In this document: one piece after another, positions 21,587 to 63,525 of the stretch
Layout of the letters: the number at the start of each line of letters is the position of its first letter
Numbering within the stretch: position 1 is the first letter of the stretch
Source: Styela clava
Taxonomy: Eukaryota
Direction: 5' to 3'
Assembly (NCBI RefSeq): GCF_964204865.1
Contig: NC_135252.1
Coordinates: forward strand, 13,082,001 to 13,146,000
Length of the DNA: 64,000 bases
Program-made: the position numbers and the translations under genes
Notes under the pieces: model-generated
Seen by the model: only the letters and a program-made list of their open reading frames with translations
Database searches by the model: none
Told to the model about the DNA's origin: nothing

Positions 21587-24500
21587 ATGGAAGTTAGTAT
21601 CGAAACAACAAACACATCAAGGAGTGAAGAAGCACCACAACTAGTATACAACAAGAGAAGACACAGTGCTGCAGGCAAAAATGGAGATACGCTAGGTAAT
21701 GATTTGGCCGAACAGCATAACTGATAAGGGGTTAGACAAATGACAAAAATCGTGTAGTTCAAAGCAAAAGAGGTATACAAGTACCATATCATTCCATAAT
21801 TCTTTTATCATTTGATATCTATGCATAAGCATCATTTGTATTGAGGAATATTTGCAAAAAAATAGATATAGCTAAATAAATGCGCTGATCGAAGTATGTT
21901 TTATGCTGTTATTGTTGCACATCAAAATAACTACAAAAATATTGTAAAATATGAGAAAAATATTAAAATGAATTATATATAAATATGTGCCTGTGAGCAT
22001 TTTGTAAAATTTTTTCATTTTTGCCAGGTTTGCTTCCAAGTTTTGGCAGCGACAAGAGCAAGGTGAGATTTGATTCAGAATTAAAGGTTGACAAAAATAA
22101 ACTCGCTAATGATATTATATGCAAGATCAATACTAAAACTATGAAATTTAGGAATAAAGAAGGAATAATTCATTAAGCACCATTTAAGATAAAACATACA
22201 TTTGAATGAGTGTATCTAGATCATGCATTCTTGCTTCGTTAGTCATTTATAAAAAGCGTTTTAAAGACCTGGTCATCCTTAAAATTACCATTTAGATGTA
22301 AATTCATCAATTACATTGAATTTTCACATGGGGATCAGATGGTCCATTATACCTATCCTTGTGAGTATCTCGTAGACAATATTATTTCTAAACAATATTA
22401 TAGACTCGCAATCGTAGGCATTCGCTTATGGCTGGACCAGATGCACTACGAAGAGTTTCAATTGACATAACAGACGACCAAAGGAAGATGCTACAGTTGC
22501 CGAGATTTTCACAGGTACCGATAGAGTATATAAAATCCGGATCCAAATATTCTCTCGTAATATGTGTTTTTGATGGTAGAGGTCAAATCAAAATCCAACT
22601 GGACACTGAAACAGGGAAACTTCTTTCAGAGATTATAAATGATATCTACGGCAACTCTGTAGAAGAGTTAATCCGATATTTATCTGCAAAACATCTTACA
22701 TCTGTATTCATCTCACTCGTTGATCTCTGGGAATTACAAACTTCTATAAAATTGAAACTTTTAAAGTTACTAACTGATCGGTATTTGCGAAAATCATCGG
22801 ATAACATTTGATGTTTTTTGCGTTTTGTGTACTAATTATAAACAGAGATATTGTAACCAAGAAAAATTTCTGCAGGTTTTTGGATTTTCTACATTCAGTG
22901 GATTGCCGATGACAAGTTACAGAGATCCCGTAATCGGTTATGAAAATACATATAAAATGCAGCCTGATAAAAAGTTTCAACCACATGTCGCTCGAAAAGT
23001 TGTAGAGAAGGTACGCGCCTGACTATAGGGGTTGAATAATTGAATTGAATAATTGGTGCTCCCAAAGTATCCATACCAAGATGGCGCACAACATGAACAT
23101 AATTTGTGTACCAGGTTAAGGTTGTTCAGGTTGTGCGTCATCTTGGTACGAATACTTCCGGAGCGCCGAATAATTGAGACCCATATTTCGTTTGTCCAAA
23201 CTTTTTTGTTTGGAACTAACTTCCTAGAAAGAGAGACAAAACCAAAAGGTTCTATAAATAAATAAAGCGCCACTTTCAAGGCGACAATTTACACGCCCAT
23301 AGGACTTTGATATTGTGTGTACTCTGTCAATAACATACCTAAAACAAGGTGCAAATATATTTGAAAGTCGGTCTTTTGTTGTGTATGTTTGGCAAACAGA
23401 AGCATCATTAAAAAATTATTTTTCTCAATTTGAACGTTGAGCGGCGGTTGTAAATAAAGATCAAATTTCAAAATATATCCGAACTTGAGAGTAATGCCGA
23501 TTTCCAACGTGAGTATATATTACTAACTCCGTTGCATATAGGTAAATCTAGCAGACAGGGGTAAATCCGCAACGAAGATATTGGAAATTAAGTTATATAT
23601 TGGCACATACTTTTTATATTCCATCCATATAGAAGGAACTTTTTTAAATCTATTCTCGCGCTCACGGAAGCATGGTTGTACTACCATGAAGACAACGTCT
23701 TCTATAAACTAACGAAACTATATAAATTACTGTGTATCCCCGAAAATAAGACTAGGTCTTATTTCAATTTTCTTTCGAAAAATAACACTAGGGCTTTTTT
23801 CGGGGGATGTTTTATGTTTTCATTTATCAAAAACAAAATTACAAAGTAGAGAATTACGAGATTTTAACACATACAAAATATGAGAGCCGATATCCATTTA
23901 CTAATAAATAACACGTTTTTATTCAAAATAACTGCTAAACATTGATTATTATATACTTGTAGGAGGGATTTCTTGCTATCGACTAGGTAAAAAAAATCGC
24001 GTTATTGAATAGGTCTTCAAAGGGAGGTCTTATTTTAAAATTGAATTTTTTTCCTTATACATAAGCTACCAAGTTATCGTATTCTTACATATTTAAAAAT
24101 ATAATTTCAAGTCAGAAAAATCCGATAAGAAAATATAGATAACTTGTTATTAAAAAAGTTCCAAATCACATTGTCAAATTTGTCGTTATATCTATTCTAC
24201 ACAACGAACGCAGTAAAATTTATAAGCACCATTTGTTGGCAATCAATAAAATACTGCATTCATTTCCTTCAGGTTATCGACGATTTGCTCTATTGGGATG
24301 ATGATGTTTTAACAGATGACGGTAAGCCTAAAAATAAAAATTTCATCTACTCACCCTGTGCCAGTTTTACAGATGCTCATTCGTCAACAAAATTATAAGT
24401 TTTACTGCCTAATATTACAGTGAATATATATTGGTTGTAAAATTTGATCGTGTTTGCACTGATATTTAGCGGTGAAAATAATTAAACCGCGGTTGGATTA

Positions 24501-25034
24501 AGCGCCCCCCGTCCTTGAAAGGTCTCATATTTATCATGTTAAAAGAGGTGAAATTCGGTATATACTGAAAAGATGTCGTTTTTATAGGTTTGAGAAACTT
24601 CTTTAGTTTGGGCAATTTGTCTATGTCATGCAGATACACCAACCAAAACAACAACTTGTGTAAAATGTATTATCCCTGTAGGTACGCCACCGAATGAAAT
24701 GAAAGAACTTGCGGCGTACGAATTAGCAAAGCACAAGCGAAGATCAAAATTGACATTGAAAATGGCTGATGAAGTTAAAGATGAGTTGAAACAACTTGAT
24801 TTTCCAAGGTATAAAGTGTATTTTATCATATTGTGCAGTCATTATATTCATATCTTTTATTTTTTCAGGTATAAATACGTTGTCAACGTCATGATAGGAC
24901 AGTTAAAATTTCAAGGGATACGGGTAGCCAGTAGATGTCTTTGGGATACTAACGTTGATAATTCCTTTTGTGTGAAGAAAGAAGGCAGACATTGTTTTGT
25001 AACTGTATTGGTTCATGCAATTTATTACGAATGA
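21587..25034 (+). CDS. Tctex1-domain dynein light chain (TCTEX1D1/DYNLT5- or Tctex2-like), ~243 aa, 7 coding exons
   Basis: Exons 21587-21695, 22028-22062, 22404-22514, 22876-23010, 24273-24321, 24682-24808, 24869-25034; frame consistent. Family motifs YENTYKMQPDKKF and PRYKYVVNVMIGQLKFQGIRVASRCLWDTNVDN..VHAIYYE. N-terminal exons are less certain than the domain. Confidence 0.85.
23055..23167. mobile_element. Small palindromic MITE (family A) in Tctex intron
   Basis: Termini GGTGCTCC.AAGTAT / ATACTT.CGGAGCGCC. Perfect 8-bp TSD GAATAATT. Related to 38466-38564 and 44872-45085. Confidence 0.8.
23730..24036. mobile_element. Degenerate Tc1/mariner-pogo-like MITE fragment
   Basis: TA followed by CTGTGTATCCCCGAAAATAAGAC, with GGTCTTATTT motifs internally and at the distal end. 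Right TIR incomplete. Confidence 0.4.
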
Positions 25035-34200: not shown

Positions 34201-37200
34201 TTGGGACAGTTTGGTTTTCATATTTCCGCCAGTACTACACGCCGGCGACAGATGCTAAAGACAAATATCGAGGAGTGAATTCAAATTAATTTTATTCTGA
34301 TTTTTATCTTTTGTGTTAGCTTTGATTTTCCTTTATCAACTTTATCACCCAATTTTATGCGATCAATTTTATCATTACCAACACTGGTAAGTGGTAATAT
34401 TTATGAAACGATAGTTGACTTTTTTAAAATCGTATTAACGTATTAATACGAGTTTCGTATTGAATAAAAATTCCGGGTTTCTAATTTATAAATCAACGAC
34501 GAGCGTATTCTCCCGTTTGATTATACTTGCGCTTGCCTCGCGACGAAGACTTGTTATTATACCGTCATTTTACATTATCCGACTTTACTACCTAGTTAGC
34601 ATTTTATAATAATTATTGATGCCGACTTATTGACGATATTCCGATTACCATGCTTCTTTTTACATCAAATCATTTCGCGGCCTAAATGTTATAGCATTAT
34701 TTGCGATAAATTTAGATCAAATATTAATTATTTGCGCATAATTTAAATTCCGTACTTATATGACATGCCTTCTCCGAAAATACAAAGTTATATCGCAAAA
34801 CAATGCATTTTGTGACATTTATTTTGCACTCACGAAAATATTAATTTACTTTTCTAACTCAAGTCGACAATCCTATCGGCTAAGATCGACACAAGTTTGG
34901 TCGAGTGCCGGTGGTATTTGAGTCGACGATAAATCAAAATAAGTTGCCGCATTTGGTAAAGACTTAAAGATTTTGTAAAGACATATTTGGCCGAAATAGT
35001 GCGAATTTACGTAATTCGTAACTTCGCTTCCGTAACTCGAAATAATTCCGTAATTCCGTAAATTACGTGCAAGCCTACATGGTTGTAGTGAATTCTTTTC
35101 AGCTTGCATTCAATATTCAAATATTTTGATTCAATAAATTTCAGAGATATTCCGCTCTCACTCCTCATTGCTATGTCAACAGTTGTGCTAGCGTATGTTG
35201 GTGCTTCGTCGGCTTTAACTCTGATGGTTCCATACAACTTAATATCTGTATTATCACCTTTTCCTGATGCTTATATTGAATACGGATGGAATTGGGCACG
35301 GTGTGTATTGTTTACTAATGTTTTTAAACAGCAATGGAAATTTATTTATTAATTATTTATTACGGTATTATACAATTATCATTGAATGTACCAAAATCCC
35401 ATAACAATTCATAACATGTTAATTTTGCCGTTGTAATGCACAGCTAGTGAGCGTTGATATAATCAGCGATTATAAAAAGATAATTATCATTAAAGACAAT
35501 ATGAAAGTGTCAATTAAAAATTCACAATGAATATATGTTTTATATTGTAATAATAATGAATAATAATAATTTTACATATATAATTCTGTCTTGCCAACAA
35601 TATCTTCAATCATTTACTTGTATTAAAAAATAAAACCATGGACTTATATATCATTATCCCAGTGAGTCCATGATCCCAATTTTGAACTAATTTACCGCAT
35701 GAGTTTAATAGGTGGACATGTTTTTTTCACGATATACGCCAGGTATATCGTAGCGGTTGGTTCAATTGCCGCTATGTCCACTGCAATGTTATCAGCAATG
35801 TACGTTGTTCCTCGGTATTTCTTTGCCATGTCTAGGGATGGTTTGTTGATGACTATATTCGCAAAAGTCAGTGGAACAACACAAGTGAGTTCGTTCGACC
35901 AAATTTTTTGTCAGTACCTAGTAGACCATTGTCCAAGTTGTATCACAATTCTTTTATTATGTGAAATGAGATTTTATCGTTCGTTGCCAAAAGAAAGTCA
36001 AAGCCCAAAGTATATATGAGTATTCTAAAAGCATGACAAATTCAATATAACAGCGGATTATAAATATTGAACGCGTTCGAGTTTCAGTTCATATGATTGA
36101 TTCGTGGTTAGAACTACGATCGTAACTTCAATTACTTAGAAATGCCCTAATGCTTCTTATCAAATCTGTTGTTGTGGTTTGTCTGCTTCATATAAATTTT
36201 CACATTAAAAATTTATGTATTTTCAGGTTCCTATTTTTGCGATTGTTGTGACTGGGATCATGTGTATATTATTTGCCGTAGTTTTTGAGTTGCATGCCCT
36301 CGTCGAATTCATTTCTATCGGGCAACTTCTTGCCTGTACTTTTGTTTCAATATGCGTCATAAAGCTCAGATACCAACCAAATACTATAACAAGGTAAAAA
36401 CGGGTAATAAAACAACTTTGCCAGAATAGACCATCAACAATTAGTTGCGTCTGAAATGCGTTCAAGAGATACCCAAACTCATCTGCCACAATTCGCAGAT
36501 GGAAGTATTGGTTTCTGCACAGTTTGTGATAAATATAGATCAAGCCACTCATTATCTCAAAATAAAAGCAAGTGCCTATGAGTTTTTTTAAATGCTTGGA
36601 TAATGGTCAGAAAACGCTAGGAATGCACAGTAATATATTTCAATTTTCAAAAATTCAGGTTTGTAGAACTGCATCATTTTGGAGATTATGAACGGCTTTT
36701 GGATACAGAAGAAACAAATGAGGTTTCATCTAATGGAAGAGTAGTGGAAACTGATCGGTCACGCCTGACTGAAACTTCTGTAATTTCAGAAATGGAAATA
36801 GAATCGAACGATGCCTCGTATGCATCCCCTAAAAGTGAAACAACAAAATCGAACACGACAGACGAAGATCTCTGGCTAAATAGCGAACATATAGTGGGCA
36901 CCGTGAAAACAGAAGTTTTATCTAGTAGATTTGGATATATTTTTCAGCCATTGACTATATATGAAGCTGGTTCCGTTCCAAGCTATCTACTTATTATTTC
37001 CACATTCGCGGTGACAATTGTTGTTGCATTCTGCCTCTTCACGCACGAGTATATCACTTCGTGGTGGAGTATTCTAATAATTTGCATATTCTCTCTAATT
37101 GCTGTTGTCTCGCTTCTTCTACTTCTCACATTCAACCAAGACGAAACTATCAAAACATTTACGGTAAGTTTGCGTAAGCAACGAGTTCAATCATAGACGC

Positions 37201-48742: not shown

Positions 48743-48831
48743 TGCCGCAGACACAGGTGGCGATCTCATCGGCAGCTTGAGTTTGCCGGTCGACAACAGT
48801 AAGCTACTTGTTAGATTGTAGAAAATTCAGT

Positions 48832-51800
48832 ATGAGATCTTATTGTATACTACTGATACTTTTACTGGGATTCTTTCTACAACCAACCGTACATGGTGAG
48901 CATCTGTTTATAAATTTTTGTCGGAGGTCAGGTCGTCTAATTTGAATTTCGATTAAACACAATATAAAAGTGATCATATTCAGGGTGTGCCTTTGCTTAG
49001 GCACCACCAATACAGAAACAATGCAACAATGCAGTATTGGCCATTTCTTGCTAAGTTATTTCTGTAAAAGTTTCTAATGGAGTTTTTACAAAAATCAACA
49101 GCCTTTTTCTATTATATTCTTTTCCGTTTTATTTTTAAACGAGTTTTAGGTTAAATATTAAGCCGCTATGATATGAATGACACATTCATTACCCGCGGGT
49201 ATATTTACAGTTTAATAATCACGTTGAAGAACAATTGATGCTTTTAAATTGTTTTCAACCAACCTGAAAACTTTTAATCGATTATAGTTTATCAAGTAGG
49301 CTAAAATCTTCAACATAAATCGTGCCAAAAATATAAACTGATTGTAAAACAGTTTAAATTATATACAATGTATACGTACTAATTACCAGCTTGTCACAAC
49401 GCTCTACATGTGAAGCCAAAGTCTGGATTGGATATTTCTGGACGAAGGAAGCGTCATGTTGGACCGCATCCGCATCCACACAGTAATCACTCATCAGAGA
49501 AGGACGCAGACCCAGAATTGTCTTTATTTTTCTCTGGTTGTATGTTTAAAAAAACTGGGCCAATGTTCGAATCCTGGCCTAGTGTAATCGATTTTATTCT
49601 ACGGGATTTATACTGGTTTGAAGCCAGCGATATTGCGTATTGTGGGTAAGTTTTATGGTACCAGTCAGTGAAACAGATGAGTATACTTTTCTGCTGTGTA
49701 TTGAGTTTTATGTTGATGACAAAGTGAATGACAAACATTCTTTGCGGTAAAACTGTACGCCCGGGGTGTTATAACAACATAATCTGTAAGGATATAATTT
49801 TGGGATGATATTGAATTAAATATAGTAATTTTGAAAGTTTGATTGCGATCTGAAGAAGAACAAATGTATTAGTATAAAATATTAACCTCAGTGTAACCTA
49901 AACAGTTTTACAAAAATTTTTAGAACTTTGCATTGTTTTTCATTCCTTATTTCGTATATAATATACGTGTGACTATTCTTCATGTTTTTGAGTTCATCCC
50001 TTATGAAAAGTAAAATTTCATCTTATTATATTCTAGGAATACAAGCAAGATGTGTTTGTTACGATTAATCACATTACTCAAACGGTATTTATATTCAACA
50101 TATTTTAGAGGTTATAAAGATACAGCAAGATGCTGGCAAAGACGACTGAACTTTTTACTTAAATTCGAATCTTCTCTAATGATACCGGGAAAGGAATGTA
50201 TACAGGAATACGATGAATCTATAAAAAGTGAAAGTAAGCAATAAATACAAAATGGGTGTATTTTATAGTTGACTTTGGATGTCAGTCGCTTCAATTAATG
50301 ATTATATTTGGTTGATTTTAATTTTCACCACAAAAGCACAAGAGATTTTTTTAGTAAAATGAGACAAGTTTTTTATTTGTCTTATTATTATAAATCTATT
50401 GATTAACATAATATAATATAGACCAGGTATTTTGAACATTTTTCAATGAATGGTTAGATCCGAAATTTAAAAAACGGTTTATCTGTTGTATCGAATCAAC
50501 TAACAACAAGTTTTCTCATTTAAGAAAATGTTTGGAACGGGTTTGCTTGAAACCGATAATACATAATAAGGCACATTGCGTACAACTTTCGTTATCTTCA
50601 GTACGTATGGTACCGTATCTGTTGTTAGTTGGGTCCGCAAAATGCTTAACGTAGGCACGCCAATTATTTGCGATTTATAGTATTCAATATAGCGCCAAGA
50701 GAACATTTTATATCTGTCATGGAGCTTCTAAAACAAATTTCTTGTTCTTTTTATCGTTTTTATTTTGTGCATATGATATCGTTTCAATATGTAAACGAGA
50801 TAGCATACATCGCCGACTTATCGATCGAAACTTTCTTGGCGGAAACTTGCGCATCGCACACACACACCCAGCACATGCGCGCTCTCGCGTAAAAATTCTA
50901 GGTCTTACACGTTCACGTTTCAATATGTAGAGGAGCATAATGCGCAGCGTAAATTTTACCTCCTTGTCGTCGTCGACACGGAAATACAAATCTGGGAGAC
51001 GTTAATGACTGTGTTGTTCACTTAATTGCGGATTCTACCATTTAATTATCCTTATTTATTCCTTCGTAGTAGACATTTCTCCGTGGACGTTACAATTCTT
51101 GTGGCTCACGACGTACATCTTGCCGAAACGATATATAAAGATGTTCACGGCCTAAACAGTCACGTTCACATAAACAATAATCAACCCTGTAAAAATTACA
51201 CGCCTTAATAGTGATATCCTGACATTCTTCCCTAAAATTCAGGAGGGGGAAGGAACGCACGTGGATGTGCCAATAACAACAGTATTTCACTTACTGTCAG
51301 ATTCAATTTGGGCGGCTTTTATTATCAATTTTTATCACAGATATGCTTGTTTGTTTTTTCATTAATTCGCAACTTATCGAGAACCGAAAAACTACGGTCA
51401 CTTTGTGACACCCTATTTGTTGACTTATTTTGGGCGGTGGAGGTTTTTAAACTCAATTTTCATTGAAAACTGATCTTGGTTTAAAATACAACAATGTATG
51501 AATGTTACTCTAACTTAGGGCAAAATTTTGTGAATATATGGTATTATACCAAACTTTAGTGCAAAAATAATAGTATACATTATCGTTATCATCGTAACAG
51601 GTTATCTTCATCTTCCAGGGGGACCCGCATTTGAAATTTTTTATCGAACTCATTATGATTCTTATCAGCATGAACCAGTTTATGGAGAATTCAAACGATT
51701 CAAAAGACAAATAGTTGGCATTGATGACACACTGAGACGAGCAGAAGATATTTTGAACAATTTGGATGATTTTTTGGATACAAAATTCACAACACCGCGC

Positions 51801-54116
51801 TCGTATTTTCAAGGCAAAACGACAAGTGAGCCCGCTACTTTGACAAAGACAGAAAAAGAACGGGAATGTCCCAAATTTTCTTTAATCGAGTTCAACAATT
51901 GTATCCAGTCTCGAGTAGATGAATTAGTCCAAACACAGTTGATACAAAAATATCCGTCTTTAAGAAATTTTAACGAGAAGTCGAACATAGAGTTTTTTGA
52001 AGATCATATGTCCAGCTGCAGGTAAGCCTCGTTTTAAAAATTTATTTGAAAAAATTCCCATTTCTAATATGATTTACATCAATGCTACTCTACGTAATAC
52101 TGTTGGGAAATTCTCCCCTTCTTCCGAGATCTGTCGGGGCATATAACATTGTGGAAGCTGTGATATAACACGATGTTTTGTTTTCTCCTTACATTTTTTT
52201 AACTGGACGGTGTAAAATGCATTCAGTTTATTTATGCACAATGATAATAATTGATATGTTCATACTATTTTTTGTAACATATAAGTAAAACATAACTTTT
52301 CCTTCAGAATAACTAAAGAAAGGAGAGGGAAAAACGTCGTTTACATTGAAAACTGCCCCGTATCGAACTCAAGAACAAAACGGCAATCGCCATTCAAACC
52401 AAATACTTTGTTGAACAGAGGCGAAATTTATACAGTAACGGACACAGGCCCATCTTTGCCAGGAAACAAACCTTTATACATACCAACTTATCATTTCCCA
52501 TCAGAACTATGTCTGATAATAGATTATCCAGATGTTGTCAAACCAGCCTCACCTGTTCGTGTACCTATCACATTATGTGCGGAGAAATATTTGGGAACAT
52601 TTTTTAATAAAACAGACCAAGATTTAGATCTGATTCCAACAATTGACCCAAATGAGAGATCCATGTACCAGAGGCCAAGTTCTAAAGGTAAAGCTTTTAA
52701 AAAGTTACATATTATTAAATATAGAAAAATTTAGCGTGCTGAAACGCATTGAAATAATTAGTCAATTAGCAGCATATACGGGTCTCAGAATATGAATGAT
52801 TCAACTATAAGCTGTCAAGATCGCTGAGCTTGCAAATCTTTTGTCGTTAATATTAAACGACGCAACGCTGAGGGTATAGAGTTTTGATTTTGTTATGTAG
52901 AGCCAAAATATATCTGCGCTACAGCACTTTTAGTTACAATGTTTTACTTTTAGCTACATGTTCATGAAATATTACATTAGGTAACCAGTCGCTTGATTTT
53001 ATATGCTTTTCAGGAAAAATAGGATCGTGTACCAAGGATGACGCATGGACAAGGTATTACAACGTTGACAATCAAGACGAAGAAGGTGACTTTGAAACAT
53101 TAGAAGATCTTCGCAATTTATTTCCAAAACTTATTTGTGATTCCCCAAAAGCAATTGACGTACGAATCGCAAAAGGTAACAAACCTCACTTTAGATCGAA
53201 GGAGTCTCTTTATATTTCTCTCGCCGATGGTTTTAGATGTTACAATGACGAGCAAAAAGATGGCGTATGTGAGGATTACAAAGTTCGATTTTGCTGCCCA
53301 AGTGAGCATCTTTTTTTCATTTTTTTAAAGGGTAAAGGTCATTACGTTTATGTGTACGGAAAATCACAATTTTCTCATTAAGTCATCATTTTCAATAAAT
53401 TATTGTATTATTCTATCTTCAAAATTATCTACTATTCATTACAATTATATTGTAAACCACATCTTCCCGCTCCCTGTGCTCAAATCCTCAACCTCAATCC
53501 ACGAGGAGAATTGTTTAAAGAAAAAACTATCCGACCCAAGTTCATTACAACTCAGACCCGAGTTGGGTATACACAGGTTTGACCTATGTTGGATAAATAT
53601 TGAGTCAAAAGGTTTTCGGTGCCTTACTTGATCGTGTGTGAACTCTCAAAACCATACTATATGGGTCCAGGCAATTAAACTTATTTATACGAGTCACACT
53701 GGAGCTTGTCTATTCTCCAACAAAAGGAGACTCGAGTCCTACTCGAACTGGATTGCCATTGTCTGATTTTCCTTGTTATGAAGACTAAAATAACATGTTA
53801 ATAATAATAATGTTGTATTTCAGAACAACCCTTGTGCGAAGAACCCAGTTCTTGGACAGGATGGTTAAACAGGAAACGTGGTCGTTCGTTCGGGGATAGA
53901 GAAACTTTGGGATACCACAAGACCAATAACAATGTTTGCGACCACCCGCTGTCAATACGTGCGAGATTGAATGGCAGTAAGAAGCCATATTGGTTTGGAA
54001 ATAACATTATTGAGATTTCACCAATCATTGGTTTAATCTGTCGGGATGCTGATCAAAGTGATAGACGTTGCAGGGACTACTCTGTTTCCTTCTGTTGCCC
54101 TTTACTATCAATGTAG
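48832..54116 (+). CDS. Secreted furin-processed precursor P1: unrecognised duplicated Cys/helical module + 2 WxxW (Mucin2_WxxW/CysD) domains, ~602 aa, 7 exons
   Basis: Exons 48832-48895, 49390-49645, 50109-50233, 51619-52021, 52308-52687, 53014-53301, 53824-54116; total 1809 nt, frame open. Signal MRSYCILLILLLGFFLQPTVHA. Sites RRKR, RFKR, RTKR. WxxW domains: WTRYYNVDN..GDFETL..ICDSP..GFRCYNDEQKDGVCEDYKVRFCCP and WTGWLN..GDRETL..VCDHP..GLICRDADQSDRRCRDYSVSFCCP. Confidence 0.85.
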
Positions 54117-56072
54117 CACAGCATATGTTAAATTGAATTTCCCAATCATGTTGATTATAATTTTGTGCCAAAAACACGAAGGATATGCAGTTTGTGGTAC
54201 AACTCTGAAGTAAACTACTCAATGCTATGTAGTCAATGCTGTACCAGATTTTTACTGAATATATTTTTAAGTTTGATGATATCTGAAAAAACCACATTTG
54301 TATTACCTTAACTTTCTCTATCAGTGTTCAGTGTTTCAGTTTTCTGTAATATTAAATTGAACAAATTAGCAGTATTAGTAAATACATGTATTTGAAGAGT
54401 ATTAATCACAAATTAAAACTATTATTTTGTTATATCATATTCAATCGATGATTATGTGATGATGACAGGGCAAAAATGCAGGACTGAAATTCTTTGAGGT
54501 GGTAAATAGCATATCAGTTTAATCGAGCAAGCAGCATTGTCATTTTGGAATTATAGTACTTGTAAAATTAGGTAATTTAAATAGTAGACAGTAGTCATTT
54601 AAGATCCATCACCCTTCGGGAAAATATAAAAATTGGCATGAATAAAGATATTTTGGGCATAAGGAAAATGTTGTCCCCAGATCATGACGTAGCATATTTT
54701 AATAGGACAGTAGACCAAGGTTAGCCAGATGATTATCGATATTCGGCACAAATTACGTTTATAGACAATTATCTAGCTAGCTACACAACAGAGAAAAGGA
54801 GTGCAATTTTCATCATCTTATATATGCGGCAAGATGAACAAAAAAAGTTCAGTACTGGCATTCCGCAAGAGATTGCCACAACAGACTCCGACAACTATTA
54901 ATTCAGCAAAAAAAACTCTCTCATAATTCTAATAATGAGCGGTGTACCAAATTTTTTTATCGAGCTTCCACGCAAATATATCAATACCTCCAGTTATTAA
55001 AACTAGAAATACATTTGTGTTAGTGCGCTGCAAGACTTGAATCAAAGACGCAGTTTCAACAAAACTAGAAAAAAATGCAAAGATATTCTCTAGTGACCAC
55101 AAGGATAAAAACTAGGTAATGACAAGCAAACTCCAAGATTCTCTAATTACATCTACGCAACAGTAGCGATACACGAAATCATTGTATTATTGTATTACAA
55201 AATGGCCATATCGCCAAATCTAACTTCTTTGCGCTTTTCAGAGTTGCTTTTTATATATTTATTAAAAACAATAGTAACATACTTAAGCTATACATAGCAT
55301 GCAGTGCTGCATTAGAAAATAAGACAAGACAAATCTAAGAGTTCTTCGGACTTTGTCAGAATTAGCTCACACCACACATCATGCTGGTGTCGGCAAACTC
55401 TTTCAAAACCGACGGGAACTGACTTTGCAACAATTTCATACAAATTTAGTTACAAATACTTTTTTATAACTTGCCCCATTTAGAATAATCCAAACTCAAC
55501 TTAAGAACATGCTTAAACTACAATGTATCAAGCTAGCATTTTAATGAGCACAAAGGAAGATTGAAATTTTTAATCGCGTGAAAAATGTTTTTGCTTAGAT
55601 TTGGATGCGAAGTGACGTCTCAGTACGAAGTACATTCACTAGACTTCAATTCCAATTAAATAAGTTTGTGACCATCTTTAATTAATTAAGCATTTGGCAT
55701 TCATTTGAAGTTTTGAAGTGACATATAGAGAGAATTTAAAAAGTATCGGCTCGTTGTTTTTTATTTTGTTAATATTATAGGCTATGACTTCCACAGAAAG
55801 CAATTTACCTCACACGTTGCAAACAAGATTTATGCATGGTTGATTTCGGTATTTAATCGTGCACAAATATAATACTATGACTAAATACGTAAAGGCTGTG
55901 GTGAACAAAACAACAACATATTACTGCCTTAAGGAAGGCCTGAAGGTATATTAACGAAATGAAATATGTCATCGAACTTGACAGCATATACGCCAGTGCG
56001 AATTGAATTATTAACCAACTGACAACAGAAGACAACAGTCAGATTTTGAACTGAGTTGGTAAAATACAAAAA

Positions 56073-59000
56073 ATGTGGTTTCAAAAAACCTTACTGCTTG
56101 TGTGTTTCGTTTTTATGGGAGTAGAAGGTAAGTTATCATTTTTGTTTTTTATCTGAAAATGCCCGGACGACAATTTATTCGATATGATTATTATCTATCG
56201 AATATTTGCCTGCGCAAAAATAAGAATGAAGTTTGCTTTTGGTTTAATAACATTGTTCATTATTTGGTATTTGTGCCAAAAAAAATTTGTTTTTGCGCGT
56301 TTTTTATATGGAGAATTATTGAGGTAAATATGCAGAAACATTTCATAGAAATTAAAATATTATTGTGCTTCTTCTTCTATTGATTTAGAATGTTGTCTTA
56401 GCCATTGCGGATAAAAACCGACCGATTAAGAAATTTTTTTTTTGACAATTCCGACAAATTATCCAACACTGAATGCCCAATTTACGATGATACGTACTGA
56501 CGCATTCCCATCGTGCATTCGAGACGTAGTTTTTCTTGCGGACGCAATTCATCACGAATGAAAAATAGTTACACTGAGAATGACGATAATTATTGTTAAA
56601 AGATAAGAAAAGAAAAAAATTTGAATGGAGAAAATTTTTTGGTTTATCGAATCTTCTTCCTCTAGCTTTTAGTATTTTGATTAGAGGATGGCCATAAATC
56701 AACGGACATGAGAAACATGGTCAGCGTATGCACGTAAAATGGCATTCAGAACAAACGTATTTTGCAAAAATAAATAAACTCTGTCAAACAACACTTAGTA
56801 CGATAAGTTGTAACAAAGACCCATTAATCTCTCCTTTAAACACAATCCGTGCGCTTCAACAAGAATGAATATTATTGAGCATCAAAGAATAAAATCAGTG
56901 TTCAGTGAAGATGGAATTGTCAGTTGAACATGATTAAAGATGTTTACCATCGATCGGATTCAAATGCTTCATAAAATAATTAATATCGTAATCAATTAAT
57001 ATTACTTAAAATATTGTGGTAAATAATGATATCATCATTAATATTTAAAAGCATTTATTTATAGTTTTACAACCACCGCGATACGGAAATTTTCATGTAG
57101 ACTCGCCCTCAAGCCATTTCATGTAAATGCTTTCGTTACATTTTTAATTTTGACGTGAGCATTTTGAGACGAATCGGTGACTCATCTCATGTCAAAATTT
57201 AATTAAAACATATTGAGTCATTTTAATTTTCGATTTCTGTATTGAATGGAAAGTACAGGGTTTCGATGCTAAAAACATTTCCGAACGAATATATTATTGC
57301 CAGGCATGGAACGTACGTGAAATACTCTTTATCAATGAAACATACCAACTTTCATGATTATAAGTTTCCAACAGTTTCATATAAACTTTTCCACTTGCAG
57401 ACATTAACTTGTTTTTATCCATATCAAGCTATTCAAAAATAGTAACGTTTTTTCTTGGTGCATAGAAATGTGATTCGGTCCATTAATAGTTTTCTCTATT
57501 GTTCTTAGTCAATAAAAATATAAGATATTGTAGATTACAGAAAATAGGAAAACTATCCATTTCTAAACATTCATCGAAATCTCGACATTTTTACGTTTAC
57601 ATCTTCACTTAAAATCTTACATTTCATTAGAATCATAAGAATATATTAATCTAGAAGTTCAATTCTCTAAATTAACAAATTAATGTTTAAATACTGTCGC
57701 AAGATAGGTTTAAATTATTTGTGAGAACAAAAGAAATGGCACTGCTGTTATGAATAAATATTTCGTAAATTCAAAATTAAAATGTAATGTGGTATCTCAA
57801 CATTTTTCTGAAATAACATGAAAGCAATCTCTTGCGCACTCATTCGGAAATAAGAGACACTCATACTAGAAAAAATTTCGGATGGCATATGAAATACCAC
57901 GAGCTAGTGAAATATTTCAGATTGATGGTAGCAGTTTCTTATGTTGTGAACAGCGTTTATTAAATAGCTTCGTATGTACATATTTTTTAATTTTTAAAAA
58001 TGTACGCCAAATTAAATTATTAAATTTTCCCTGTGTTGTAATTTTTCAACTCCCAAATTGAGCATATGACGAATAATTCTTTATGTTGATGTTGTAACAT
58101 TTTTTATGAGCAATATTTCGAGTTTTAACTTTCCTCGTCTATGTTCCAGCGTGTCGAATGCCAAGTAAAGATTATCCACCAGACGCGTTCCCCGAACATG
58201 GCGACCAAGGCGATCAAGATGGGGATTCACAAGGCAGAAAGAAAAGGCACGTGGTAACTAACCCCCACGACGTTGACCATGTTTTGAGCGACTTTTTCAC
58301 TACATGTTTGTTTGATAAAACCGGAAGTGTTTTCTCATCGTGGAGAGCCGTTATTGATTTTGTTCTTCGTGATACAAGATGGTATTCTGCATCCGACGAA
58401 CAGTTTTGTAAACGGTGAGTTTATTTGAAAATAATAATTTGAGTCTATGAATTCATAGAATTCAATAATGATTTACCATTTTAATAGGATTAAATATAAT
58501 TTAATTTGTGTTTCCAGACAATCCAATATTAATTAAATGAAAGCAACAATAAACCACCTTATTTTACAGAAACTATGACCGCGAAATTCCTGTTGAATGC
58601 TGGCAGAATCGTTTTGAAAAGCTCGTTGCTCTAGATTCAAAGTTGCTTCCAAAAGCGAAGGAATGCATGCAAGAATATGCTTGGTCGAAAGGTAGGAGAT
58701 ATAATTTCCATATTATATTCTTATAAAAAAGCGTTGCAGCAACATACAAAGGGTAAGGTATGGATGTTCCTATTCTGTTACGATAAATAGAAAATCTTAT
58801 CTGCCATTTACATGACAATCCCGTTGGACATCGGATGGAAATTTCGAAGATTTTAGAAGTGTCAGTAAATGAAGATATAAACAATGCCCACAAAAATGAG
58901 TATATCATAAATAATTTCCCAACCCGATTTTCAATTCATGTAGTGGTTTCGAATGCATAACTTGTACAGCCTGATAAACCCCAAAGTGATTGGAAATTGA

Positions 59001-62000
59001 AGCAATGAGGATACGGTGGTATTTTTGATTGTTATTACCTTTTATTATTTTCTTTTCTAGAAACACCTATCCGTGGAAAACGTGGCGTGGCGTCACCTGG
59101 ACGTCCTCGAACCACCTTAAAAATTGATATTTGTCTTGGAATTTCCACAAAGGAATATGGATCTTGCGTGGAAGATAATCTCTTAACTAGAAAAAATATT
59201 GCAATGTATGGTTCATTGAAAGAATATAACCAGAAGTCCATTGATGACTTTGTATCCGATCACTATTCTGAGTGCAGGTATTGATTGAGCTCTTACGATA
59301 TTTGGTATAAGAAATATACCGGAATGCATAATTAACTAACACTTTACCGTTTAAGTGCTACAAGTATTTTTTCTTGAAAAGTACACGCGCAAGGTGAAAG
59401 TATTAAATTACACTGTGCGAGACTATTTTTCAACAGGCATTTCACCAAACATAACACCACAGATCTTCACAAGTATCTAAGAAATTAGACTACAATGTGT
59501 CCTGGAAGTACATCAACAGCCAATTATTAATCAATTAAACTGAATTATAAAAACATACATATGAGATTCTATTACGACATGAACTGAAAAATCATTGCTA
59601 ATTGATAGGTAAAAACGTCCTATATATATATATATATATTAGTATAATTGTGCATGAGTACAATGTAACAATGTAAAATTACAGCAAACTATTGTGACTC
59701 TCCATTGCTATTCCATTATATTTACTGGGTTGGTCAGTTTCGTTTGGTGTTTCACGGTATGGCAAAAAAGTTAAATCAAATGCTAACAATTTGTTTTAGA
59801 ATCACATCTCGGTACAACCGTTTTACTGGAAATGTCTACATGGAAAATTGTCCAATTCATTATTTGAATCCATCATTCAATACAGCACCTCGTACGCCTA
59901 CATGTTTGTCAACAACGTTCAAGGAAATTGTACGAACTTCATCGCCTCTTTTCGCTGCAACAAAAACTTGTATTCAAAAATATTCTAACGGTGAGAACTT
60001 TATTTTAATTTACATGTACACATATTGATTTTGTCTCATACGCGTCATTTTTGTTAACGTTTGCGCAATATTTGTGGGTAGTTCAGCATGTATTTGGTTT
60101 GTTTCGAGCGCCCTCAATGAACACGAGGTGTGATACAGCATTAATTTAGCCCCGGGCTCGATAAATTAATCCGTATTCTGAACGACGGAGCAAACACGTA
60201 GAGGAATATTATTGCTGTGCTAAAATTTTAAGTAAAATTTTTTTAAATTTTTATTTTGCAAGTTGTCTCATCTTTCTTAATTAAATATTACATTAATTAA
60301 ATTACATTAAATATTACATAAATTAAATAAATACAGCATTAATTTAGCCCCGGGATCGATAAATTAATCCGTATTCTGAACGACGGAGCAAACACGTAGA
60401 GGAATATTATCGCTGTGCTAAAATTTTAAGTAAAATTTTTTTAAATTTTCATTTTGCAAGTTGTCTCATCTTTCTTAATTAAATATGGATGGTGGATTAA
60501 GCATCAAATTTACGCTTTCCCTGCAGTTCATCCGTATTTATGGGCTGCATCGCTATGTATTATCACTATTTTTACTGCAGATAAATGCAAAAATGTGAAA
60601 TGCTGGCGTCCGTATGAACAATGTGACCCATCAACTGGAAGATGCATTTGTCGGCCGGGATATGAGAAAAATAACCGAGGAACTTGTGTTGGTAAGACGT
60701 CAATAGGCTGTTGCTGTTTTCTCTCCATCTCCACTTTTATTTTTTTTTAAATTCTGTATTTTTAAACAGAAGAAAACAAATGCCGGGCCAGATTCTGCAG
60801 TGGCTTACACAAAGTGTGTGATCCAGATACGGGAAACTGCGTCTGCAAGGAAAACTACGTCTTGAATGCACGCGGTGATTGCGTCAGTACGTATTTGTTA
60901 CTTTTTTATCGAAATTGTAAAAAAAATATTCTTTTTCATTGATTGGTTTTTATTCGTAATGGGTTAGACCAGGGGTCTCCAACTCAAAACATGTCGTGGG
61001 CCACTTTTTAAAATTTATTGACTACGCGGGCCGCAAACCAAGAAATCAGGTATAAAAATGGGTATCTGAATGTATTGTGTTGAAATTACACTTGAATCTC
61101 ACAGCAAACGAGACATGAAACATATTCATTCACTTGTGCTGGATATTTGATCTCGATGTTTGGCCTTATTTTGCGTTGGTGTGCTAGTCTTAAGACAGCA
61201 TGCAAATGCTCGTCCGTTAGTCGTGTGCGGAGGGCTGACTTGCTAACTTTCATAGTGCTTTCATAACTGCTCGCAAATATAAGAACTGCCAAAAATTGCA
61301 GGTATGCAAAGTGAATGTGCAATTAGCTTTGCAAACCATTCTTCGGGCACAATGGAGTGACCGAAACTCGTTTATTTCGTCACAATGAACATGCGAAATA
61401 AAATTATCGCATCTATAATAATTGCATCATAACAAAATTATAAAACATGAACGTGGACAACAGGGGGGAATTTTGCTTCACTTTTCACAGTTTGTCGGAC
61501 TCTTGATGATAAATGACGCGATAAAACCTACTAATAGTGAACGTCGTACTATCTTAGTTTTTGTGGAAAAATGCCAAACATGATGCGGACGCAAAAAAAA
61601 AATGGTTGGCGGTCCGCATGCGGCCCGCGTGTTGGAGACCCCTGGGTTAGACAATATTCTAAATTGACAGAGGCAGAAACACAATAATATTCTAATTTCT
61701 GTGAAATGTTTCCGCAGTCTGAGTCGGTATTTTTTTTAAATCTTTGCCAAATAGCATACCCCGATTTGTTGTACAATGAATAAAGTGATGCTCGACGTTT
61801 CTCTAAATACACCATAAAAAATAAATTTAGTGGTTTACGATTTTATCAATTATTTGGTGATTTTTTATTTTATTCACTCTCTTTATGTCTGATGTTCAAT
61901 TTTAGTGCTGAGTAGATGCGCATTGATATTTTGTGGAGGACAATATAAAACTTGTGACGAACGAACAGGATTATGTGTCTGTATGGAAGGTTACGTTCCA

Positions 62001-63525
62001 GATGGGAACGGTATTTGTCGTGGTGAGTCCCATCAATTCTGTCGCTTCGTTTTTCTTTATTCCCTGACTTTGTCCTTGTTGGTTCTTCTGTACTACCTTA
62101 GCTCGTTGTTTTCATACCCACTTATTTATTTCTCTTCTCTACTTGAATATTTACTGCAGAAATTATAGTTTATCTTTGTAAAAGTTTTAGTTGTTTTTAG
62201 AACAATCTTCTGATCCATGTCGGAGAAAGATTTGTGGCGTTGGTGAACAATGTGTTGTATATGAAGGATCCCCGTTTTGTGTTTGTATGGAAGGTTACGA
62301 AAGAATTGTTCCTGGAATATGCAGAAGTGAGTCGGTATTACTATAAATTTTAATGCTATTTCAGCTTTATATATAATAGTGTTTTCTATTGACGCGGTTT
62401 CATTATATCGGTGGAATTAATATGAATACTCCAATTAACATTCATGTGTCATTTGTGAATATTCTTTTTTAATACTCTAATTATAACGTAATTCTTTAAA
62501 TTGCAGTGCCAAACAATTGTCGCCAAACGAATTGTGGGCCTAATGGTAGATGTAGAATGAGACAGGGGCGGCCGGTTTGTTTTTGCAATCCTGGGTATAT
62601 CAGGAAAGGCGGCAAATGTGAACCAGAAGGTATTACTTTTTGCTTATTCTTGATAAACTAAATAAATGAAGGGGTGAGTTAAAAATGATACATAATGTAT
62701 GATAATATAGAAAATGAACCACTTACCACTCACAATTTTGTTTTCGTCCTCCCCCCTTATACCCTCAAGAAGGAGTCGTGGAATAATTGAAAATTCAGTT
62801 TAATGTAACGCATATCTATCTTTTTACACATTCAGTTTAATTTAAAACCCAGCATTTGATACGACTTATTGTTTCCACAGTAATTGATCCATGTGCAACT
62901 GTCCGTTGCGGTAGATATATGGAGTGTAAAGTCGATCAATTCGGTGCACCAGGTTGCGTTTGCATTGCTGGATATGTTCCTGACCCTGAAATGAATGGAG
63001 TAGGCTGCAAGCGTCCTGGTGAGTAGAAAGTTAAATAAAAACTACTGCGAGTTTAGCTTAATTATTGATAGGGCATACCTTTGTGCAGACTGATAATTAT
63101 AACGCGAAAGTGCTTGAGACTTGATCCAATCCGATTAGTTATCCAAAAGTATGTTGCGTTGGACAGTGTGTTTAATCACACAGTTGAACTTAGATATTTT
63201 TTTATAACAGACCCGTGTGATAATGTTGATTGCGGTCCGCACGGTAGATGTGTCAGAAACGGAAACTGTGTTTGCAATCCGGGATATAGCAAAGTAAACG
63301 GACGCTGTGTTGGTAAGTTATCCCAATTTTTTTTTTTTTTTTTATTTATTTATCACAATTTCTTGCTTGATGATAGTTTAATTCTGAAATGCATCTGAAA
63401 AAGGAAACTAAAATTTTTTTTTTTAGATCCTTGCGAAAACATTAATTGTGGGCCAAACGGTAGATGCGTAAGAGGGCGTTGTATTTGCGATAGAGGTTTT
63501 GTAGAAGTTAACAGACGATGTGTTG
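56073..63525 (+). CDS. Secreted furin-processed precursor P2: same N-terminal modules as P1 + at least 8 EGF-like repeats; 3'-partial
   Basis: Exons 56073-56127, 58150-58414, 58570-58691, 59061-59277, 59800-59990. Then phase-1 EGF exons 60581-60691, 60770-60886, 61906-62022, 62201-62326, 62507-62629, 62881-63018, 63211-63312, 63427-63525. Signal MWFQKTLLLVCFVFMGVEA; sites RKKR, RGKR. Each EGF exon has 6 Cys with C-x-C-x-x-[GN]-[YF]. The last exon ends in a donor, so the gene continues past the window. Confidence 0.85.
60133..60486 (+). repeat. Tandem duplication of ~156 bp (60133-60288, 60331-60486) with AT-rich filler
   Basis: Near-identical copies ATACAGCATTAATTTAGCCCCGGG...TTTCTTAATTAAATAT, about 3 substitutions. 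Confidence 0.95.
60970..61644 (-). mobile_element. hAT (SPIN/Buster/GTF2IRD2-like) deletion derivative in a P2 intron
   Basis: 14-bp TIRs CAGGGGTCTCCAAC / GTTGGAGACCCCTG. Perfect TSD GGTTAGAC. Minus-strand remnant FASSYESTMKVSKSALRTRLTDEHLHAVLRLA resembles hAT transposase C-termini. Confidence 0.9.

Follow-up and report, generated by a model that had tools for sequence, protein, structure and literature searches.

In nematode astacins and ADAMTS proteins, a constant protease head is combined with tails that vary among EGF, TSP1 and ShK modules, and a furin site serves to remove the pro-part. Prosaposin and the nematode polyprotein allergens are composed of tandem helical disulfide units with cleavable linkers between them. 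Tunicate extracellular materials, namely the tunic, the mucus filter net and larval adhesives, are unusual, and to our knowledge few tunicate-specific proteins of these materials are known. Here we describe two neighboring genes, P1 and P2, in a 64,000-nucleotide stretch of the Styela clava genome (the window; G000:C3:13082001-13146000, in an assembly of 377 Mb). Their predicted products share an N-terminal region, the head, which as judged from sequence searches is an undescribed domain, and carry different C-terminal tails. The family defined by this head is real and unnamed, and is probably lineage-restricted.

The P1/P2 family resembles astacins and ADAMTS in design, with a signal peptide, a dibasic site, a constant head and the same set of tail modules. 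Its head, however, is predicted to be helical, carries neither HExxH nor any other catalytic motif, and has no protease fold match. With the polyprotein allergens and prosaposin, the family shares tandem duplicated helical units bounded by basic motifs, but it has no sequence or fold match to them, contains only two units and is fused to matrix modules; the fold search did not place the head in these helical families. Gel-forming mucins and other CysD proteins (PF13330; MUC5AC CysD, PDB 8ov0) contain true WxxW domains, as does P1, where they lie on phase 1-1 exons, and the mucins and P1 are both secreted, in the case of P1 by prediction, and cysteine-rich. In contrast to the mucins, P1 has no VWD assemblies, no proline-, threonine- and serine-rich (PTS) region and no C-terminal cystine knot, and its N-terminal 420 residues match no part of a mucin. 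The tails are ordinary known modules, and the undescribed part is the head domain.

The best explanation, to which we assign a probability of about 0.6, is a secreted modular family of about 17 members in which a duplicated head is combined with swapped tails, cut by convertases and targeted by its tail. As read from the sequences, the precursor begins with a signal peptide and a short peptide starting with cysteine, followed by a head of two units, each preceded in most members by an R-x-K/R-R motif. After a phase-1 intron, the head is joined to WxxW, EGF-like, EGF plus YWTD, TSP1 or ShK-like modules. Along the secretory pathway, proprotein convertases would cleave the precursor at both motifs. 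One constant activity, most likely binding or self-assembly, would come from the head, and the variable tail would place this activity in a given mucus or matrix layer.

P1 (48832-54116, plus strand) corresponds to the S. clava RefSeq gene LOC120342514, named "uncharacterized protein". Its product, XP_039267313.2 (608 residues), maps without mismatch to seven exons in the window, with GT-AG boundaries at every site and intron phases 1, 2, 1, 2, 1 and 1. The predicted signal-peptide cut leaves cysteine as the first residue of the mature protein. The exons are as follows.

48832-48895, plus strand: exon 1, start codon and signal peptide (exact mapping of XP_039267313.2)
49390-49645, plus strand: exon 2, N-terminal Cys peptide, RRKR at 49443-49454, first half of unit A at 49518-49643
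50109-50233, plus strand: exon 3, second half of unit A, with C-x21-C-x3-Y at 50131-50211
51601-52021, plus strand: exon 4, long linker, KRFKR at 51693-51707, first half of unit B at 51864-52019
52308-52687, plus strand: exon 5, second half of unit B, with C-x21-C-x3-Y at 52510-52590
53014-53301, plus strand: exon 6, a phase 1-1 exon, WxxW (CysD-type) domain 1 (PF13330, E 9.3e-20)
53824-54116, plus strand: exon 7, coding to 54113 and then stop, WxxW domain 2 (PF13330, E 1.1e-14)

Against Mucin2_WxxW (PF13330), for which the gathering cut-off is 22.4, exon 6 reaches 71.6 bits and exon 7 reaches 55.4, and both belong to this domain family. An insert in exon 5 that is found in P1 only carries a third motif, RTKR (52372-52383). 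RefSeq isoform X2 uses an alternative acceptor of exon 4 at 51619, and the predicted isoforms X3 and X4 lack exons 1-2. In the runs X1-X5, which are RNA by guess, 23-32% of the sampled words of 48781-54780 are present; as an indirect measure, this share is about that expected if the whole P1 mRNA were present. A literature search found no paper for the gene and protein accessions or for Styela together with WxxW.

P2 was modeled from splice sites and homology, with a start at 56073. The model of its head is free of stops, with canonical splice sites and phases 1, 2, 1, 2 and 1. Exon 1 is the best hydrophobic ATG exon within 54100-58150, and its end, GVE followed by A and C, agrees with the VEAC junction of the paralogues. 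A hydrophobic stretch directly 5′ of exon 2 was considered as the signal peptide and rejected, being a translated polypyrimidine tract. The predicted exons of the head, followed by the tail modules identified from cysteine pattern and splice sites, are listed below.

56073-56127, plus strand: exon 1, start codon and signal peptide, strong donor G/GTAAGT in phase 1 (model)
58150-58414, plus strand: exon 2, N-terminal Cys peptide, RKKR at 58236-58247, first half of unit A
58570-58691, plus strand: exon 3, second half of unit A, with C-x21-C-x3-Y at 58598-58678
59061-59277, plus strand: exon 4, RGKR at 59072-59083, first half of unit B
59800-59990, plus strand: exon 5, second half of unit B, with C-x21-C-x3-Y at 59903-59983, phase-1 donor
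60581-60691, plus strand: EGF-like module 1
60773-60886, plus strand: EGF-like module 2
61906-62022, plus strand: EGF-like module 3
62201-62326, plus strand: EGF-like module 4
62507-62629, plus strand: EGF-like module 5
62881-63012, plus strand: EGF-like module 6
63211-63312, plus strand: EGF-like module 7
63427-63525, plus strand: EGF-like module 8

Each of these eight six-cysteine modules occupies one phase 1-1 exon, and the last donor in the window lies at 63525. Module 5 passes the Pfam cut-offs for PF00008 (21.9 against 21.5) and PF06247 (26.0 against 26), and module 7 barely passes that for EGF_2 (22.2 against 22.1), while the other six give sub-threshold matches to EGF, EB or TIL models. 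Judged by sequence, the modules are divergent EGF-like domains. The array continues in the next 10 kb beyond the window (L013), where, besides at least 17 further exons of this type, it includes a TIL domain (PF01826) and a classical EGF domain (PF00008). Just 3′ of P2 (G000:C3:13156001-13166000), plus-strand exons look annexin-like by eye from their translated repeat motifs, and they likely mark the 3′ limit of the gene. Intron 5 of P2 contains two near-identical translated stretches, at 60165-60281 and 60363-60479, about 200 bases apart, which suggest a short direct repeat.

The heads of P1 and P2 correspond exon by exon. When the genome was searched in all six frames, exon 2 of P1 matched that of P2 at E 7e-12 with 59% identity, and exons 3 and 4 matched their P2 counterparts at E 0.027 and E 0.012. 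The matches are colinear, on one strand and of equal phase, and the two heads are related far beyond chance. A sequence-only reading of the window had proposed plus-strand neighbors with heads alike in each exon, which the RefSeq mapping, the P2 model and the genome search confirm. Its intron phases for P1 are those of the exact mapping, and the two WxxW/CysD domains that it placed in the P1 tail coincide with the PF13330 matches. The peptides it quoted all occur in plus-strand stop-free stretches between 48.8 and 63.6 kb, with the AYC/QFC peptides inside exon 2. Its count of at least eight EGF repeats in P2 holds for six-cysteine modules, eight of which lie in the window with more beyond, but they are divergent and only two reach Pfam cut-offs. 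The end coordinate that it gave, 63525, is the last donor in the window; P2 starts earlier than the exons it quoted, at 56073-56127, and the array continues.

Searches for known relatives of the head returned no family. In Pfam (hmmscan, E <=0.1), the head has no match, either exon by exon or in six full-length natural members, and a profile search of PDB sequences gave no match to the head, its sole match being that of MUC5AC CysD to the tail. The ESM Atlas yielded no usable match for the head. For AlphaFold2 models of two divergent natural members, P0003 and P0014, Foldseek against the PDB returned nothing at E <=0.001, and VIA-align indicated no known family; a BFVD fold search with a head model also found no match. 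Both VIA lists include the N-terminal domains of spider silk (PDB 2k3q, 7a0i), which resemble the head as helical bundles at the N-terminus of secreted structural proteins. The sequence-only reading had recognized no domain in the head and had named a match to a known Pfam or structural family as grounds for abandoning its proposal; the searches run leave the first statement standing and produced no such match. Two other candidates were tried and rejected: a metalloprotease-type head, whose catalytic motifs are not conserved, and Ciona Epi-1, which is an unrelated trefoil protein.

The layout of the head was read from an alignment of natural proteins and a profile of 12 exon-2 copies. The family conserves a signal-peptide junction in which A is followed by C and then by H, Q or R, with the predicted cut directly before the cysteine. 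The N-terminal peptide that follows is variable, 9-32 residues long, and starts with this cysteine. Unit A contains, in order, an FF-x-x-C helix, S-W, V-D-F-x-x-R-D-x-x-W and C, and then C-W-x19-C-x3-Y in exon 3; F, C, W and C are invariant in the exon-2 profile. Between the units, a weakly conserved linker closes with the second dibasic motif, and unit B ends in a second C-x21-C.

The two units appear to be related. The profiles of exon 3 and exon 5 align with an hhalign P of 3.6e-5 and a probability of 71%, with both C-x21-C motifs in register. Exons 2 and 4 align weakly (P 0.009), in an alignment that superposes their dibasic motifs and F-x-x-C helices, and four cross-control exon comparisons give P 0.18-0.8. 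Intron phases in the head repeat as 1-2-1 followed by 1-2-1. With moderate confidence, the head can be read as two tandem copies of one phase 1-1 unit of two exons, because the exon-wise comparisons stand above the cross controls and the phases repeat. Compared as wholes in six sequences, the A and B halves reach a P of only 0.015, a less clear result than the exon-wise one. The AlphaFold2 model of P0003 is helical, with a predicted local distance difference test score (pLDDT) of about 90 at residues 60-150 and 180-240, and that of P0014 is helical over both units with pLDDT 70-88. On this modeling, the unit is predicted to comprise about 100 residues, helical and disulfide-stabilized, in two tandem copies per head.

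The dibasic motifs recur at defined positions. Nine of the 12 exon-2 copies in the alignment carry the first as R-x-K/R-R. At the second position, P1, P2, P0003, P0006 and P0014 have the complete R-x-K/R-R, while L007 has only KRR and P0005 only R-T-E-R. Furin-type motifs are found in P1 (RRKR, KRFKR and RTKR) and in P2 (RKKR and RGKR), and in the P0003 and P0014 models the dibasic motifs sit in low-pLDDT linkers. Convertase processing is putative and is indicated solely by the conserved R-x-K/R-R motifs. The same motifs could belong to a polyprotein-like precursor, from which the units would be cut out and set free as small, soluble ligands or carriers, leaving the tail behind in the matrix. 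A dibasic motif before each unit in most members is consistent with this, as are the helical, cysteine-rich nature of the units and the divergence of the linkers. Between P1 and its orthologue P0005, the linkers are 20-26% identical, against 42% and 38% for units A and B, and the WxxW domains are 52% and 46% identical. We consider this polyprotein-like alternative rather doubtful.

It is also improbable, in our judgment, that the dibasic motifs are unused or minor and that the head is simply a lineage-specific domain under fast evolution, with a role in structure or recognition such as in immunity or in the surface coats of gametes or larvae. In favor of this reading, the first motif is missing from three of the 12 exon-2 copies, and the size, clustering and divergence (30-60% identity) of the family are usual features of fast-evolving extracellular families. 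Against it, both motifs hold their places at the two unit boundaries across organisms and across paralogues that are only about 30% identical.

A further alternative takes the N-terminal Cys peptide as the active product, with the glycine before the basic residues in the P1/P2 clade acting as a C-terminal amidation signal. In each of the five sequences of the P1/P2 type (P1, P2, P0003, P0004 and P0005), the first motif follows a glycine, a thin indication that would fit an amidated peptide. The peptide is also the best conserved stretch between P1 and P0005, at 62% identity, but this concerns only 21 residues, a small count. Moreover, in the other subfamily the motif follows Ala, Ser or Val, the length and sequence of the peptide vary greatly between paralogues, and a large folded protein with matrix modules would be an atypical peptide-hormone precursor. 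We regard an active amidated peptide as a very unlikely explanation of the family.

Within S. clava, the exon-2 profile identifies 17 head loci, and weak exon-3 and exon-4 matches are colinear at the same loci. Several of the loci form clusters, and they are distributed over the assembly as follows.

C3: 13.13 Mb (P1, P2), 13.63-13.65 Mb and 11.47 Mb
C8: three loci at 22.58-22.59 Mb and one at 9.49 Mb
C17: two loci
C16: two loci
C2: two loci
C1: one locus

Tails were read downstream of the heads and then scanned with Pfam; ShK-like modules are assigned by cysteine pattern only, without a Pfam score.

P1, L017 and L018: WxxW tail, PF13330 above cut-off
Two C8 genes: TSP1 tail, one by Pfam match (TSP_1, in L015) and the other by Cys/Trp pattern only
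L019: TSP1 repeats (TSP_1) and an ShK-like module
L014: EGF and an ShK-like module
L016: EGF-like modules
P0006 and P0014 (RefSeq proteins): ShK-like ends
P0002 (the C16 paralogue): EGF-like modules and YWTD propeller repeats

The RefSeq name of P0002, "prolow-density lipoprotein receptor-related protein 1-like", derives from its tail. On C8, three head-family genes stand in tandem on the minus strand (L015, G000:C8:22581601-22591600, and C8:22579665). One of these genes has two almost identical TSP1 exons (L015:2047-2334 and 1775-2077), whose near-identity suggests a very recent exon duplication.

Members outside the genome assembly were sought among 1.84 billion cluster representatives with a two-sequence exon-2 profile, which recovered six proteins in all, three from S. 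clava and three from Logan assemblies. This profile missed several S. clava paralogues, and the search cannot show absence from Ciona or other tunicates. Searches for homologous proteins added P0014 as the sole further member. P0005 (543 residues) is an uninterrupted open reading frame on a 1,901-nucleotide contig with a head and two WxxW domains, and P0003 (351 residues) is an uninterrupted open reading frame on a 1,338-nucleotide contig with a head and a TSP1-like tail. Neither has a match in the S. clava genome closer than 42-63% identity, and they therefore come from other organisms. As read from these contigs, P0003 and P0005 represent head plus TSP1-like and head plus two WxxW domains on single transcripts outside S. 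clava. The tail of P0003 and the WxxW domains of P0005 also match dense exon arrays at G000:C1:15.68-15.75 Mb and C18:9.64-9.66 Mb, which are large local TSP1-like and WxxW families outside the head family.

The modular family with swapped tails that the sequence-only reading had envisaged is borne out by the 17 loci and by their WxxW, EGF-like, EGF plus YWTD, TSP1 and ShK-like tails. Its assumption that head and tail form one transcript agrees with the RefSeq annotation of P1, P0006 and P0014 as single transcripts and with the P0005 and P0003 contigs; for P2, the join is a prediction of the present gene model. The convertase processing of the head and the part in tunic, mucus-net or adhesive assembly that it proposed are putative.

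Several observations weigh against the modular-family explanation. Secretion, cleavage and function are predictions from sequence. The duplication signal is moderate for exons 3 and 5 and weak for exons 2 and 4, and the alignments behind the AlphaFold2 models are shallow (21 and 29 rows, mostly fragments). The first dibasic motif is absent in three members (the C16 paralogue P0002, L007 and L010), and the second is absent in P0002. The search outside the genome used the two-sequence exon-2 profile only and could miss a distant known family. For P2, the join of head and EGF-like array is predicted from the gene model, and no P2-head protein was found with that profile among the cluster representatives. 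In addition, the newest RefSeq model of the C16 paralogue, XP_077974700.1 (756 residues, 'vitellogenin receptor-like'), is headless and starts at residue 431, inside the EGF-like region.

These last two observations, together with a stop codon reached after 12 codons when the exon-5 donor is read through, would fit separate transcription units for the head and the EGF-like array of P2. In that case P2 would encode the head alone, in about 280 residues, and P1 and the other loci would have to carry the case for heads paired with swapped tails. We regard this split as unlikely. The first EGF exon starts in phase 1 and needs an upstream exon, and the scanned parts of intron 5 contain no signal-peptide exon. 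Furthermore, both the head and the tail of P2 are closest to those of the C16 paralogue (L012/L021, G000:C16:8990001-9010000), in which older RefSeq models of 1,186 and 1,187 residues join head, EGF-like region and YWTD propellers.

The family provides a concrete candidate set, with a defined unnamed domain, about 17 copies in one genome and a clear pattern of exon-shuffled tails. It also appears to be a clean case of how a young domain can arise, first by duplication of a two-exon, phase 1-1 unit and later by dispersal through the exchange of modules. A more far-reaching version holds that the unit is a new fold and a convertase-released extracellular effector (a carrier, ligand or self-assembly switch), exon-shuffled in ascidians onto at least five kinds of matrix-targeting tail, with a conserved N-terminal amidated Cys peptide in the P1/P2 clade; we give this version little credence. 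Structural and matrix biologists would take an interest in the unit if its fold turned out to be new or if it were released as an effector; otherwise, the family would be one more lineage-specific extracellular family.

Elsewhere in the window, upstream of P1, unrelated long open frames lie on the plus strand at 22428-22811, 24699-25034 and 36699-37196, and the frame at 36699 encodes transmembrane-like hydrophobic segments.

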